A stretch of DNA of 62,211 nt, filler included, from Choristocarpus tenellus KU-1152 (Eukaryota > Protista > Phaeophyceae): the NCBI GenBank assembly GCA_964200185.2. It is 8 parts of 8 records of this genome, joined end to end, with 100 filler letters (N's around TTAATTAATTAA, not from the genome) between each part and the next. Parts side by side here need not be neighbours in the genome. Positions count along the whole stretch, not along the records: positions 1 to 9,715 come from CAXNAD020003458.1; 7 more parts are not named here. One strand, 5' to 3'. Below the pieces are notes generated by a model. The model was given only the letters and a program-made list of their open reading frames with translations. It did not search any database and had not been told where the DNA came from. A program made the translations under genes and the position numbers. Shown in pieces: positions 147 through 9,715 of the stretch; position 1 is the first letter of the stretch, and each line of letters opens with the position of its first letter.

Positions 147-497
147 ATGGCCAAGACACCCTCCAAGAAGTCTGCCAAGGCCACCAAGAAGGCTGGCGAG
201 AAGAAGAACAAGAGCAAGCGTACAGAATCTTACAGCTCGTACATCTACAAGGTCCTGAAGCAGGTCCACCCCGATACTGGTATCTCTAAGAGGGCCATGT
301 CGATCATGAACTCATTCATTAACGACGTGTTCGAGCGTGTGGCGAGCGAGTCTGGTCGCCTAACTCGTTACAACAAGAAGGCTACCCTTTCGTCTCGTGA
401 GGTGCAGACGGCTGTGCGCCTGATGCTCCCTGGTGAGCTCGCCAAGCACGCTGTATCTGAGGGTACGAAGGCTGTCACCAAGTTCACCTCGTCCTAA
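147..497 (+). CDS. H2B: Histone H2B, intronless, 116 aa
   Basis: ATG at 147 gives MAKTPSKK...[41 protein letters not shown]...[33 protein letters not shown], the canonical H2B sequence. The ORF-track start at 39 is a GTG upstream of the real start. Confidence 0.99.
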
Positions 498-2623: not shown

Positions 2624-5600
2624 TACTATTTGCAAGCAGCCCGACCGATTCTGAAGCACCGGAGTTGCCCTGAAGGTGCGTCCTGGAGTCTTCAGCTCCA
2701 GGGAACTTAGCCACTGTAGCCATAGGAAGCATGACCCCCACACCCACCTCGACATATCCACTATGTCAACTGCCCAACGGACTAGTCAAGTATAGCTATC
2801 TGCACTACTGTGGCACCCTCGCAAAGTCGGCTCGAGAATGCCTGTACAGATACTCCTTGACACATGCACAGGAGGTCGGAACTACATTTCGTCTGCTTTT
2901 TGGCGCAGTACTACTCTCTGGGGAGGTAGCACCGGCCTACCGCACCTTAACCAAACTGGTAAAGGTACGTTGCACGCGGCGGCAAATCCGAAAGGATGCA
3001 GTATTCCACCTATGCAGGGGTACTAGGGTCCTGCATACTGCCAATATTGTTTCCCCCAGAGGATAGAGTCCGCAATGTGAAATTTAGAGTAGTGGAAGGC
3101 CTACCTTACGGGATGGTTCTAGGAGCAGCATTCTGTAGGCAGCACAAGAGCATACTGTCATTTAGAGAGGGGGAAGGCTTTCGACCAGCTCCAAACTCGC
3201 CATGGACACCTTTTGTTCGAGATGTGACACCGAGATCTCGTGATAACGATGTACCCCTGTCAGTCCTAGGAGAGTGGCAAGCATCAATGACACCACAACC
3301 CGACCATCCAAGTATCACAGACTGCATCTTAATAACCTCAGATCAGCTGGATGTAGAGAACCCCCCCCTGACGCACTCCCTAGATTCCCAAGATGCACTA
3401 GTGCTCCAACTGGTGAACATATGCAACCAGAGAACGAACATACAAGTATTCTTATGTAGACCCAGAAGCAGGCACCTTAGATGCGGATCCAGAGGCACGT
3501 ATCGCAACAATAGATCTTACCCAGGACAAGGATCCTCTGACCCCATCACTGGGGAGTCCAGGTCTAGTACCCCTTCCGGTAGAGGTAGCGTGGGAGGACG
3601 ATGGGACTCTGCAATGGGAATTGCGTTTGTCAGAAGTACAACATGTAGAAGGGTTTGTCAGCAAAGTCTGCAAAGGATTCGTTAAGGTGGTGATTGAGCC
3701 CTTATCAGAGTATAACCTGGAATTAGGAAATGCTGTCGGAGTTGCCAGAGGTGTACAATGGTGGAACTCAGGAACCCCCATTTATTGCAAGCTAGTAAAT
3801 ACGTGCAGTAAGCCCGGCAGTGTCCAGGCAGGGCTGCCAGTTGCAAAGGCGATTGCTCTGAATACTCAGGATACAGAGAGGGTGGTTGCACTCTTTCAGT
3901 CACTAACCAAACCCCCCAAAGATCCTCAAAGAGCACAGGTCCTGCTTGCCACAGCTAGTTCTCAGAATAGGCATCCCCCAGAAGCAGACGAGACTGGTGA
4001 CTGCCCGGTAGCAGAGGAAGAAGAAACCCCTTCAGATGAAGCCAAGGGGGTCCGGCATCAATCGGTGGGCCTTAGCGATGTCAATATGGGACAGCTGACA
4101 CCGGGGCAGAAGGAACACAGTTGGTGGAATTTTTCTAGGAATTTCGATATTTAGGAGTATTCCCTGAGGATCCCAAACGAGTTCCCCTATGCTCTAGAGG
4201 AGTACTACACATGCCACTATTAGACGAGAATTGTACACCCTACGCAGCGAAACAAGTACCCTTCTCTCCTGAAGAAACACAGATGATTCAGGCCGAGGTT
4301 AAGCAGGTGCAGGAACGTGGTATCATTAGACCCTCCACCTCAGCGTGGGCAGCAGCAGTGATAGCAGTATGTAAGAAAGATGGGACCCTGAGGTTGTGCA
4401 CAGACTATAGGATGCTTAATGATCTCTCGCGTAGTGATAGTAGAGGTCTCAGGAACATCGCCAGCATCTTTGATAAGCTTAAGGGTTCTAGCTATTTTAC
4501 TGCCATAGACCTAGCGTTGGGATTCTTTCAACTAGAAATCGCAGAGGTAGACAAACATAAGACAGCCTTCCGTGACGCTCACGGACAACTTTGGGAATAT
4601 AACAGGTGTTGCTTTGGGTTGAAATTCTTACCTGCAGTATTCTCTAGTTACATGAGAGAGGCCTTAGGAGATCTCAAAGGAAACGGTGTAGAAAACTGAC
4701 TAGACGATCTTTTTGCTATAGTTCATCATTTGATGAGCACATGACCAAACTTCGCCTCCTTCTGACCAGACTCAAGCAATACGGCCTGCCTGTAAAATTT
4801 CCCAAATCCTTGTGGTGCATGCCCTCACAAGAATTTGTAGGAATGAAGGTAGGCAGAGATGGCTTGAGCCCTGCACCATCAAAAATGATAGCAGTAGCAA
4901 ACCTTGATCCCCCATCTACAGTTGAGCAGCTAAGAAGTTTCCTAGGCATGACAGGAAACATGTAACAGTTTGTTCCGAACTATGGCCAAGTAGCTGCACC
5001 ACTGACTGACATCCTCCGGAATAGAGGGTATGCTTCCAAAAGAGAAAGGAAGTAGAGTATCCCTTGGGGATCAGAGGAGCAGAAGGCCTTTGAAGAACTT
5101 AAGGTGCGTCTGGTTTCTCCGCCAATCCTAGTCTTTCCTGACTGGGATAAGCCGTTCCTCCTCCATACAGATGCGAGTGAGGAAGGGGCTGGAACAACGC
5201 TAAACCCAGGTACAGGATGATGACCAATAACATGTCATAGCATATGCCAGCCATAGATGGTCTAAAACAGGCAGTAGGAGAGCACCCACTGAAAGAGAAT
5301 GCATGGCTATCTTGTGGGCTGTAGAACACTTCGACTCCTATATTTGGGGTAGAAAATACACCCTAGTCACTGACTACTCAGCACTGACTTGGCTCTTCAA
5401 GAGTCGTGAACTTAGCCCCAAGCTCCTCAGGTGAGCCCTCCGCCTTATGGAGCACGATATGGAACTGAAGTGGCGAGCAGGTTCGAAGCACCAACTAGCG
5501 GATGGACTGTCACGACTCTCCTCACCAACACCGTCAGGTTTGGATATATAGGCGTTGGAGGTTGGCTACCACTCAGTAGTTCCCACGATCAAAGTCTACC

Positions 5601-7314
5601 AGTGTCTATGCCCCCTCCCTCTCATTGGATGGCCCCATAAACGATGCCTAGTGTAGACCCGACACACTCCCCACAGCAACCCCTTCCCCCGCTTAACGGC
5701 CACTAACACTTTTGGTTGGCAATCTTTAGACACTACCCTCGAAGATAGGGTAGAAATAAAAGGAAAAACAAGAGAAGAGAAGCCACCATGCAAAAAAAGG
5801 CGCAAAGGTACACCAAGGCCCACGAACAAGAAGGGTAGTGACAGAATAGTCCGAATAAGTGAGATGGTTCAACACCACCCCACTCTCAAGAGAGCAATTC
5901 AATGGCTACTCTCTCAGACGTGCCAGAGATAGTGGAGAGGCAGAAGAAGACCCCTTCCTGGACAGCATACGGGGTGTACTTGAAGGCCAAGAACACCGGA
6001 GGTCGTCACTCAAATGGGGAAAAGGGAGTATAGATGTGGAGTCATATCCCCTAGATGATAAGGAGTTACTCTGGTACACCCCTGGAGAGTATGCACCTAG
6101 GCTAGCAGTTCCTCGTTCACTAGCGTCAGACATGATAGCACTAGTACACCTGCAGACTAGTCACCAGGGAGTTGGACGCAGAGTAGCCCTAACCCGTCGA
6201 TACTTCATTTGGCCCTCACTCCACAAAGACACGCAGGGTTATGTTTTATCCTGTGGCTGTCGCAGACGGAAGAGGACTAGGAGCGCACAAGTGGCAATGC
6301 TGCCAGCCAAGTTCCTGGAACCATGGGATGTACTTGAGACGGATCTACAATATGTGGGACACATCTCAGCAAAAGGCAACAAGTATCTATTAATTGTGAT
6401 TGATAGAGCTTCGAGATTCCCTTTTGCATTTCCAATGGCGTCAAAGGAAGCAACTGGAGTAGCAACAAACGTGTTGGAATTATGTCTTACATTTGGGATC
6501 CCTTTGTCAATTCGTAGTGATGCAGGAGGGGAGTTCACAGGAGACATAATGAATCATCTTTGTCGTTGGCTGAAGGTCCCTATCAATTATGGACCAACTG
6601 GCAACTCGAGAGGACAAGGGGGAGTGGAAAAGATGGGAGGTCTGCTTTAGAAGTCCCGTCGGAACTATTTGTGATGAGGCCAGATAGATAGTATGAGTAT
6701 GTATCTCCGGCATGTTGGGCACAACGCACTACTCCAGACCCATCTGACCCCCTCAACCCCACCCCCTTCCGAGCCTTTTTTGGCCGTGATCCCCACTCTC
6801 AGCTAGACGCCGTCATACCCAAGTTGAATGGGGACATAGAGGTTGGAGGATTGGATTCCTTTATTGAGCAACGCAGACAGAACTTCAGGGAGGTACGAGA
6901 AGTCCTGGAGAGACGGATGTCTACAAGACATAAATACAGAGAGAGAGAGTCAATGCTTTGATTGCTAGGTCTTCCCCAGGACTCGGATCCAAACCAGGTG
7001 ACCTAGTTCTAATGAAAGAAGCAGACAGCTCTATCCATGGGGAAAACCTAGGTGAGACAAGAGTAGGCAGAAAGCTAGTCCACAAAAGATGGACAGGACC
7101 ATGGACTGTAAAGGACATTTCTCATCAGAGTAGCAGCATGACAGTCGAACTGCTGGGTAGGCAAACATGCACTCGTAATGTTCATGCTTCTTATGTGAAA
7201 CCCTTCCACGTAAGGCCCATCCATCTGAGACATAGCTTCCAAGAAGAATCCACCCAACTAGTGTGGGAATCGGACCTGGGTCTATCAGAGCAATCCGTGG
7301 TAGCAACCCCGATG

Positions 7315-7773
7315 TACACTCTTACTGATAGGAAAGCAGTATTGTCGCCATCCAATGTATGGCACTGGGAGTACCGGGGGAAGTATCAGAATGGAGAGTT
7401 GTCAGACTGGGTAACCGAGAAAGAGGCTATTGATAGCTTCACCCCACTACAGTAAGATGTCTTCCATGCCCTCTGGGACCTCCATAATCCAGACACAAGC
7501 CCACGTCCTACTGACACCTCTCGCCAAGGGAAACCCTTATCTAGAGAGGGTACATTATGCCTCTTCCCCACAGGTACCACTGTCAAGAAGTCATGGAAAG
7601 ACGAGAAGGAAAGGGATAAGTGGTACACAGGTACAGGTTTTGACTTCAAGTCACCTTACTGGAGGGTACGGTTAAATGATGGGGATTGGGAGGAATTGAA
7701 CAAACGTGAAATGAGTCCTTCTCCCAAAAATGATCCAACAGGTAACTATACACCCAGAAGGCAAAGTACGTGA
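7315..7773 (+). other. Integrase C-terminal extension: chromo-like segment plus Tudor-like module (one premature TAA at 7453-7455)
   Basis: Single frame: YTLTDRK...WEYRGKYQNGELSDWVTEKE...LQ*DVFHALWDL...LFPTGTTVKKSWKDEKERDKWYTGTGFDFKSPYWRVRLNDGDWEELNKREM...RQST*. Confidence 0.6.
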
Positions 7774-8394
7774 TGACTAACCGGTTCATGTATGAACACA
7801 GGAATCAAACATTGACAGTCCTAGTCCCCAAAGAACGTAAGACAGGAGAAGTCAGAAACATGAAGTAACCCTTATCAGCCCAGGCAGTAGTTTTTATGTT
7901 TGTCTTTTCTTTCCTCTTTTTACCTTATTTATTTATTCTTTTTTTCTCTTTTTGTCAGCCCTGGTGTCCCGGTACATCCTTACTTACTTTGCTGTACATT
8001 GCTTAAGTTCTCCCTCCTCTATCCCTTGCCTCCTTTCTTTTATTATTCTTCTTTTTTTTTGCCGACGTTGATGTTATTGCCTGTTTTATGCACTAGCAGC
8101 CATCAGTATGCTTCGTGCTGAGGGGGCATGAGACAGGCAATAATCAGATGATCCTTGGCACTCTAGGGAAGCTGTACTTTAGAGAGAGTGAATATATCCT
8201 AAGATTAGGCCAGATGCAGACAGATGTTTCCCAAGTTAAGGATAGATGTTGTGGACCTAGTAGGAGTACGGTACCTTCTTACTCTTCCATTTTTGCTTGC
8301 CACAGGATGATCTGAGGTGATTGATGATATATATTGTCTTCACCGGTGACAATCGCCGGTGGTAAGCGTGAAACATGTATTGCTAGTTCACGCT

Positions 8395-8515
8395 GGGGGG
8401 ATGTTACAGGCGAATCGTGGGAGCATTTTTTCTCATGTTCTAACAAAGTGCGAGCATTTGCTACACGCGAATAGCGCGAGCATTGTTCGTCGTGTTCTAA
8501 CAAGTGCGAACACTA
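8395..8515 (+). repeat. Polypurine tract and probable start of the 3' LTR, containing a ~57-bp imperfect tandem duplication
   Basis: GGGGGGA|TGTTACAGGCGAAT at 8402, second unit TGCTACACGCGAATAGC at 8459. The same start recurs at 12225. LTR end not determined. Confidence 0.55.
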
Positions 8516-8996
8516 TACGATATTAGTAACACATAGGTAGTGTTACAGAATAAATGCCTATTTCATAGTAGATACAGAGTAAGATTCGGAATGCATACGT
8601 AACATTACAGAAGAAAATGTCAAAGTTCTTAAGAAGTTGCAGAATAGAGGTTTTGATTGGAGCACGTATAGAGCAGTTGCATACAAGACCAAAGAAATTG
8701 GGTGGATGATGAAAATAATAAGAGGGCTATTTGTCAAAACAATTTACCCACCTTGTCAGTTTTTTTTATCTTGAACTTAAAATTGAGTCGAGCTTTGAGC
8801 TAAGCACTGAGTGGAGTATCGAGAGAAAAGGCTATCTGACACCCAACAAACTGTTATAAAGGACAACGTCCCCATAGCGTCGTTTTCAGGTCGTTGGGTT
8901 TGAGTTGTACATCCTGTGGAGGTGAGTTGAGGGGCACGATGTAACAGAGGGAGCTAGTGTAGGTTTCAAGGGGTCTATTAGTAGAGGCTCAGTGCA

Positions 8997-9255
8997 GAGC
9001 CAAAGTATCTTAGAGGGTACAGTCGCGTCCATTTGGGGGCCAAAGTCCAATGTTGCAATTTTGATGTAATTTTGGCTATTGTGTGTGTTCGGAAGTGCCA
9101 ATATCGATGTTCTGGACACACCTTCTAATAACATACCCATTTTACACATTCCGAAACATTTTGGAGTAGGAAAATGTCATTAAAAAACCGATGGGAAGAC
9201 AAGATACAAATGGACAAACAGGGCAAAAATCGTACCCTCTAAGATACTTTCACTC
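8997..9255. mobile_element. MITE family A copy 2 (259 bp, opposite orientation to copy 1)
   Basis: GAGCCAAAGTATCTTAGAGGGTAC...GTACCCTCTAAGATACTTTCACTC with a perfect TGCA/TGCA 4-bp flanking duplication. Confidence 0.9.
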
Positions 9256-9715
9256 TGCAGCCGAGGCAGGAGGTGGAACCATGAACTAGATGGAACACCT
9301 ACTCAAAGGGGGAGATCGAGATTGGGCGAGGAGAGTATTTTCCGATTCAAAGGCATAGTGTAAATGAATGAAGGTGGAGTGCTTTGGATGATTGTGGGCT
9401 GTTGTGGAAGAATGGGAAATAGGTTTGACTGCTAACCTACTATCGTACCATTGTGTTGCATTACTTCATCAATGCAAAAAGAAGTTTGAAATACTCCGGA
9501 GTATGAAGGTGGCATTAATGAATGCCTTATGAGGATATCACTAGCAACAAATTTCATTTTATGGTCCTTGACTACAAATGCACTCATTGTGTAACCTAAC
9601 GTTGGCAACTCCATTGGAGGCTCCACAGGGATTTAAAGGGGTTTGACATAAAGCTTCAAATACACATCTGTCTTACCTGCAACAATTCCTGCACCATTGA
9701 CTAATTACGCAGTCG

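Follow-up and report, generated by a model that had tools for sequence, protein, structure and literature searches.

A decayed Ty3/Gypsy copy in Choristocarpus tenellus and the predicted chromo-fold and Tudor tail of its family's integrase

Downstream of the integrase core of a Gypsy-type element in Choristocarpus tenellus KU-1152, translation yields two open segments in the same frame with a stop codon between them, and the locus raises the question of whether these are halves of a single integrase tail, which kinds of domain they form and what such a tail might do. The window, by which we mean the whole stretch of 62,211 nucleotides that was analysed, is open in frame 1 from 6934 to 7452, with a chromo-like segment at its end; an in-frame TAA stands at 7453-7455, and frame 1 is open again over 7456-7770, with a Tudor-like segment inside. 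The reading that we favour, with a probability of about 0.8, is that the element is a copy, dead and truncated at its 5' end, of an abundant Ty3/Gypsy family of the Gypsy-10_Ec32/Gypsy-1_tMin lineage, and that the family carries a selected, in-frame tail running from the GPY/F module through a chromo fold and a linker to a Tudor domain, which would serve as a chromatin tether.

All features of the element lie on the plus strand. In tblastn searches with ORFs of a near-complete element (L045), Pol of the window copy occupies 2763-7713, and its reading frame changes at least eight times over this length. The aspartic protease region (2763-3214) is decayed and passes from frame 3 to frame 2, with 42-52% identity to the RT-containing ORF of L045, and the reverse transcriptase and RNase H (3525-5470) are split over three frames, with 41-65% identity to L045 Pol and a Pfam RVT_1 match (E 7.1e-9) in 4211-4696. 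The integrase zinc (H2C2) domain and rve catalytic core (5949-6943) contain a frameshift near 6620-6650 and were recognized both by tblastn with the L045 integrase and by Pfam in 5859-6647 (Integrase_H2C2 E 1.3e-8, rve E 6.4e-11). The order of protease, RT, RNase H and integrase in the tblastn map, together with these Pfam matches, is that of a Ty3/Gypsy LTR retrotransposon. A GPY/F-type integrase C-terminal module follows at 6994-7209 (G-D-L-V ... W-T-G-P-W ... K-P-F-H), evident as a motif in the translation and conserved in the alignment, with no Pfam match. On the 3' side of Pol, a non-coding internal region (7777-8401), common to the sister copies, ends in a G-rich polypurine tract at about 8390-8401, and is followed by a 3' LTR of 545 bp (8402-8946) with the termini TGTTACA...TGTAACA; the LTR boundaries are common to about 30 scored genome matches, and the ends were compared in 20 copies. 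Three solo LTRs of the family are flanked by 4-bp target duplications (GAGT, GACC and GTAT). In other copies of the family a primer-binding site starting with TGG directly follows the 5' LTR; a search of the window found neither of these, and the window copy is thus 5'-truncated and inactive. With its many frameshifts and no 5' LTR, it is a dead copy.

Since the window copy is decayed, the two-part peptide might be an accident of reading through a stop, the downstream part being non-coding or a separate gene, and the stop between the parts and the many frameshifts elsewhere in the copy are what such an explanation would lead one to expect. It is refuted, however, by the other copies and the relatives. 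The tail was searched for with natural sequences throughout, namely the two pieces of the window taken separately and naturally open sister copies. In the window's own assembly (164 Mb, 27,310 contigs), at least 150 places, out of 356 candidates, matched the 105-residue downstream piece. Thirty sister copies were fetched; in most of them the position of the window's TAA is occupied by Leu, and both halves belong to one ORF. The 421 open codons of one of these copies (L008) begin in the second half of the rve core and run up to the end of the Tudor domain. A word-indexed search with the tail of that copy as query retrieved 18 proteins that are 41-54% identical to it, and the tail is covered to 93-99% in 17 of them and to 71% in the truncated remaining one (P0018). 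Several of the 18 contain Integrase_H2C2 and rve, with the tail in frame after both domains, and two (P0003 and P0016) carry a precomputed annotation of PF21743. The continuity of the frame in most sister copies and in all distant relatives, dN/dS values well below 1 in the tail and the existence of 872 related protein clusters leave the accidental explanation with a negligible probability, and the fusion of integrase and tail is ancestral, in frame and conserved.

Pairwise Nei-Gojobori estimates among open-frame copies of the window's genome gave dN/dS ratios of 0.11-0.14 for the chromo module, about 0.2 for the helix and linker and 0.33 for the Tudor domain; as only open-frame, mutually non-independent copies were compared, these values are biased somewhat downward. 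They argue for purifying selection on both modules as the family spread. The initial annotation had proposed that the frame continues through the one TAA (at 7453) into a Tudor-like segment, and had named the recovery of intact copies with an in-frame fusion and dN/dS<1 as ways of checking this; the translation, the sister copies and relatives that carry the tail in one continuous frame, and the ratios of 0.11-0.33 across the tail all bear the proposal out. Of the peptide that it delimited (7315-7773), the two modules stand, whereas the final approximately 15 residues do not. Most sister ORFs stop about six codons past the Tudor domain, and a copy-specific frame difference near 7714-7733 lets the window copy continue to 7770; these last residues are therefore not ancestral. 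Comparison of the window translation with the sister copies accordingly places a copy-specific read-on beyond the family's usual stop at 7714-7776, with TGA TGA at its end.

The family to which the tail belongs is broad. A profile search of 1.84 billion cluster representatives (clusters at 50% identity) returned 872 proteins at E<=1e-3, of which 386 reach E<=1e-10; fragments make up most of the 872, and the long ones (1,017-1,169 residues) have the tail at the C-terminus. A divergent subgroup, about 30% identical, has kept both modules, and its Tudor core is like that of the published Tribonema element. One of the 18 relatives comes from a metagenome contig of 9.7 kb on which three ORFs are arranged: a long upstream one, one for RT/RNase H and one for the integrase and tail. 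The long upstream ORF, which has no Pfam match, possibly encodes Gag. Searches of the ESM Atlas yielded fold matches at TM <0.5 and feature matches with scores of 0.77-0.82, the latter being leads only. One Atlas cluster of 127 proteins (576 aa) has rve in 94% and the PF21743 Tudor in 14% of its members, with the taxa given as Preplasmiviricota (polinton or virophage-like); at a TM of 0.33 in the fold search it is a lead only, and if it is real, integrase-Tudor fusions exist beyond Gypsy elements too.

The first module of the tail is preceded by a conserved lead-in at 7210-7308 (R-P..L-R-H..D-E-F..W..D-L-G-L in the alignments), for which AF2 predicts low-confidence helices (pLDDT 45-78). The module itself (7309-7488), interrupted in the window by the TAA, is predicted to have a chromodomain fold of three strands and a long C-terminal helix, an assignment that draws on AF2, VIA-align and Foldseek and is accompanied by conservation and by the dN/dS ratios given above. 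When AF2 was applied to the natural tail of L008 with an 18-sequence alignment, it gave a model (mean pLDDT 77) of two folded modules with a linker of low confidence between them, and the relative placement of the modules was not confidently predicted (whole-tail pTM 0.48). Foldseek matches of this two-domain model were weak and of high rmsd, the best over the whole tail being SETDB1 and Spindlin1 (E 6e-3 to 5e-2), and the chromo module was therefore folded alone. The resulting model, built from 47 sequences, reached a pLDDT of 80 and a pTM of 0.71, with strands at residues 34-44 and 50-58, a short third strand and a helix at 78-91, in agreement with the chromodomain arrangement of a three-stranded antiparallel sheet on which a C-terminal helix packs. 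In a VIA-align comparison with 48,161 PDB representatives without a Foldseek prefilter, the best 34 rows were nearly all chromo or chromoshadow domains (Z 5.6-3.5; 51-66 residues aligned of 53-69 in the targets), headed by Oxpecker (Z 5.6, 59 of 61 residues), Chd1 CD2 (5.4), SUV39H1 (5.3), Chp1 (5.1) and HP1 (5.0), which were followed by Rhino, CHD4, cpSRP43, CBX4/7 and Polycomb. These Z scores are modest, as expected for domains of 55 residues, and the argument lies in the uniformity of the match list; for both modules every structural Z was below 8, a range that VIA-align calls common for small domains. Foldseek likewise placed the Chd1 chromodomains as the best matches of the chromo module (probability 0.89, E 0.3).

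At the sequence level the chromo assignment of the first module is not supported. Pfam Chromo matched none of the 47 family members at E<=0.01, the upstream (integrase C-terminal/chromo-like) piece of the window copy had no Pfam match, and nothing significant emerged from PDB sequence searches with profiles built for the tail as a whole and for each of its two modules. The closest PDB sequence match of the chromo module was CDYL2 (E 0.27), and in this sub-threshold HMM alignment the first cage Tyr faces a variable non-aromatic position, the Trp faces Y/F (72% aromatic) and a gap stands opposite the third Tyr; judged from this alignment, the module seems to be without two of the three canonical methyl-lysine cage aromatics. 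Residue W61 is invariant in the 47 tails, and the helix motif L-D-x-F-H-A is at least 90% conserved in them; the window's TAA falls inside the most conserved motif of the family, S-F-T-P-L-Q-L-D-V-F-H-A-L-W. On the predicted structure, the first module is thus chromo-like by fold, not by sequence. The initial annotation had described it as a chromo-like segment and had pointed to the chromodomains of chromoviral integrases. The chromodomain fold is upheld by AF2, VIA-align and Foldseek, whereas the label of a chromoviral reader would exceed the data, given the lack of a Pfam Chromo match and the single aromatic among three cage positions in a non-significant alignment.

A variable Pro/Arg-rich linker (7489-7563; AF2 pLDDT <60) follows, with a short conserved helix at its end (R-E-x-A-L; model residues 120-126), and leads to the second module at 7564-7713, a putative Tudor domain of the PTM/DIR17 type with an SH3-like barrel. 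This assignment is based on Pfam, AF2 and VIA-align and on homology to the Tudor domain of Gypsy-10_Ec32, and the dN/dS ratio is in keeping with it. PF21743 (PTM/DIR17 Tudor) matched the 7456-7770 piece over profile positions 1-44 of 48 (E 5.2e-4); the scores of 20.2 bits for the window and 25.8-26.5 bits for L008 (E 5.5e-6) are under the Pfam gathering score of 27.2 bits. Over half of the family members (26 of 47) matched at E<=0.01, with a best E of 2.7e-7, and the Tudor assignment is supported at the sequence level. In the L008 tail model the module has a pLDDT of 88-92, and the predicted strands (132-138, 144-155, 158-163 and 168-171) and helix form an SH3-like barrel. VIA-align related it to the Tudors of SETDB1, RDM15 (with H3K4me1), PHF19, SMN, LBR, 53BP1 and Pcl at Z 4.5-5.1 over 49-57 aligned residues; KOW, PWWP and designed barrels scored equal to or slightly above these, up to Z 6.2. 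Positions Y158, W159, R160, the aromatic 163, D165, W168 and E169 are at least 90% conserved in the 47 tails, and aromatics occur at four positions (F/Y, Y/F, W and one variable) beside a conserved acidic D-G-D-W-E-E turn. The suggestion of a Tudor-like domain is thereby supported by the profile match, the predicted barrel and the similarity to Tudor structures including LBR; when the tail is examined with AlphaFold and Foldseek, as had been suggested, chromo and Tudor-type folds are both predicted.

Retroelement integrases normally end in an SH3-like module, and small barrels are hard to distinguish by fold, so the Tudor-like barrel might be the integrase's ordinary C-terminal domain under a wrong label. 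The ordinary GPY/F module is already present upstream, however, at 6994-7209, and the barrel lies about 120 residues beyond it, on the far side of a distinct chromo-fold domain and the linker, and matches PF21743 by sequence; mislabelling is accordingly a most improbable explanation.

A fusion of this kind has been described before. The curated Ectocarpus mobilome includes a Gypsy lineage whose C-terminus carries a Tudor domain, namely Gypsy-10_Ec32 (PMC12477816; Genome Biol 2025;26:320), which to its authors' knowledge is the first transposable element with a Tudor domain; its homolog in Tribonema minus is Gypsy-1_tMin, both being assigned to 'lineage I' (PMC12477816). The initial annotation knew of no description of such an integrase, and this publication, with its Tudor tail, removes the claim to novelty for the Tudor part; our literature search found no other paper on such an element. 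Gypsy-10_Ec32 is 11,528 bp long, with 636-bp LTRs, 4-bp duplications, 87 annotated copies in Ec32 and many deletion derivatives, and its Tudor domain was aligned to cd20401 (PMC12477816). By eye, the published Pol end shows W-x-W-E-Y-R-G-R-Y, the L-Q-L-D-V-F-H-A-L-W helix, the P-R-P linker and, as the core of the Tudor, P-Y-W-[KR]-V-R-Y-x-D-G-D-W-E-E-L in the same order as the window family. The two also agree in having target duplications of 4 bp and numerous deletion derivatives. They differ in LTR length (545 bp in the window family against 636 bp) and in abundance, the window family being much the commoner: of its 356 candidates, at least 150 were scored as tail matches, as compared with the 87 copies annotated in Ec32. 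Amino-acid identity to the best matches of the window genome is approximately 50-55%, as estimated by proxy from the match most like Gypsy-10_Ec32 (P0006), which aligns with the window family across the whole integrase and tail. By this sequence comparison the window element is a probable member of the Gypsy-10_Ec32 lineage, and with an identity of only about 50-55% it represents a distinct family within it.

Chromodomains were assigned to three other Ectocarpus Gypsy lineages, and lineage I was given a Tudor domain only (PMC12477816); the predicted chromo-fold module thus exceeds the published annotation. The same study describes the chromodomain-bearing Ectocarpus Gypsy lineages as unrelated to chromoviruses and states nothing of the kind for the Tudor lineage (PMC12477816). 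What goes beyond that publication is only the upstream chromo-fold module and the breadth of the family (872 clusters at 50% identity). The increment, consisting of a second reader-type fold, selection and breadth, is modest and directly testable.

Comparison with other known systems places the tail among small chromatin-reader folds with features of its own. Like chromoviruses (Tf1, MAGGY and others), Chronos and Ectocarpus lineages II-IV, the window family has a small royal-family reader fold after GPY/F at the integrase C-terminus, presumably a chromatin tether; unlike chromoviruses and chromodomain Gypsy lineages, it is without a Pfam Chromo match, its canonical cage appears to be incomplete and a Tudor domain follows as a second module. 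With the PF21743/CDD cd20401 family it shares a profile match over 44-45 of 48 positions and the SH3-like barrel, whereas the cd20401 consensus, as given in a figure of PMC12477816, has A in place of the W that marks its own D-G-D-W-E-E-L turn. Furthermore, that family occurs in DDT/PHD chromatin proteins and the present module in a transposon integrase, the tested copies lying just below the gathering score. Two royal-family barrels in tandem are also found in the SETDB1 triple Tudor, Spindlin1, the BAHCC1 TTD and the CHD1 tandem chromodomains, but the window tail mixes chromo and Tudor modules, and its flexible linker comes with no predicted fixed interdomain geometry.

Integrase tails are the best understood route by which retrotransposons choose their landing sites. 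To our knowledge, the algae that host Tudor-bearing integrases have repressive chromatin without the customary methylation of H3K9/H3K27. On the model of chromoviral integrases, whose tails read histone marks (Gao et al. 2008, as cited in PMC12477816), the tail would tether the integration complex to a chromatin feature and thereby bias the landing sites of new copies. The Tudor barrel may be the likelier reader of methyl-lysine or methyl-arginine, in view of the conserved aromatics beside the D-G-D-W-E-E turn, and the chromo-fold module may act as a docking or second-contact module through its highly conserved C-terminal helix. A Tudor-bearing integrase is a rare natural case outside the chromodomain paradigm, and the Gypsy-10-type tail is a tandem of two reader-type folds, with a conserved chromo fold upstream of the Tudor. 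Domain boundaries and natural sequences are defined well enough for the tail to be expressed for histone-peptide binding tests.

SH3-like barrels also bind nucleic acids and proteins. The tail may consequently be real and selected and yet not read histone marks, both modules binding instead DNA or RNA, or a protein of the host or the element (for example in integrase multimerisation or through a host tethering factor), comparable to the SH3-like C-terminal domains of retroviral integrases and the chromodomains of cpSRP43 and Chd1 CD2. Consistent with this are the scores of KOW, PWWP-ssDNA, CarD and other nucleic-acid-binding barrels, which equal those of Tudors, and the presence among the top chromo-fold matches of Chd1 CD2, cpSRP43 and chromoshadow domains, none of which relies on the canonical cage. 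In the CDYL2 alignment, moreover, one of three canonical cage positions is aromatic, and the most conserved motif of the tail is a helix rather than a cage loop. On the other hand, the Tudor module is related in sequence to PF21743, a family of histone-reader type, three positions of its barrel, next to conserved acidic residues, are aromatic in about 90% or more of the sequences, and comparable chromoviral tails read histone marks, to judge from the citation of Gao et al. (2008) in PMC12477816. We regard a tail of this non-reading kind as unlikely, though with a chance large enough to be taken seriously. A more specific proposal is that the tail is a bipartite reader, in which the chromo fold with its non-canonical pocket and the Tudor domain would jointly recognize a combination of chromatin features (such as H3K79 or H4K20 methylation) of ochrophyte algae without H3K9/H3K27 methylation and so steer integration, the pair of modules being old and common to the divergent Tribonema-like subgroup; this is speculative and we consider it rather improbable in so detailed a form. 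The initial annotation had suggested that the Tudor module may target a lineage-specific histone mark, for which H3K79me2 or H4K20me3 would be the candidates. H3K79me2 has been associated with the bodies of transposable elements, consistent with a silencing mark (PMC12477816), and this association by itself cannot separate targeting from silencing after insertion.

The genome also contains shortened derivatives of the family. Six copies (L011, L018, L020, L021, L025 and L027) represent a deletion derivative with one shared junction, at which a pre-integrase segment (approximately window 5660-5790) runs straight into the conserved helix motif; integrase and chromo strands are gone, and the Tudor is still in frame. 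The shared junction suggests amplification of this derivative in trans. Another group, non-autonomous, older and heavily decayed (L031-L033, L039, L040, L043 and L044), has protease-like sequence with an LLDTGA motif upstream of a degenerate tail at 40-50% identity and is without RT, RNase H and integrase. The possibility that the tail module belongs to an independent host gene was considered and rejected, as the 40-50% identical genome matches are decayed non-autonomous derivatives with this LLDTGA protease-like sequence upstream.

Some features of the non-coding parts of the family are also recorded here. The 5' end of the LTR (8402-8515 in the window, and also the upstream flanks of L048, L049, L054-L060 and L064) is built from units of about 57 bp repeated in tandem, every one of which starts with TG[TC]TACA, and the number of units differs between copies, so that LTR length differs as well. 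The non-coding sequence that separates the stop of Pol from the polypurine tract (7777-8389) is unusually long, at about 610-630 bp, and common to the sister copies; in the window copy it is pyrimidine-rich at 7890-8060.

In the neighbourhood of the element, an intact core histone H2B gene (147-497, plus strand, within ORF 39-497; Pfam Histone E 6.5e-21) with an H2B-typical C-terminus is found upstream of the retrotransposon remnant, at a distance of about 2 kb, and the boundary of host DNA thus falls between 500 and about 2760. In addition, a MITE-like repeat, about 260 bp in length and bounded by terminal inverted repeats of 28 bp, is present in two copies that are 84% identical, one just past the 3' LTR (8993-9259, plus strand) and the other, inverted, just upstream of the protease region (2366-2624). 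The same repeat adjoins other copies of the family (L050 and L052).
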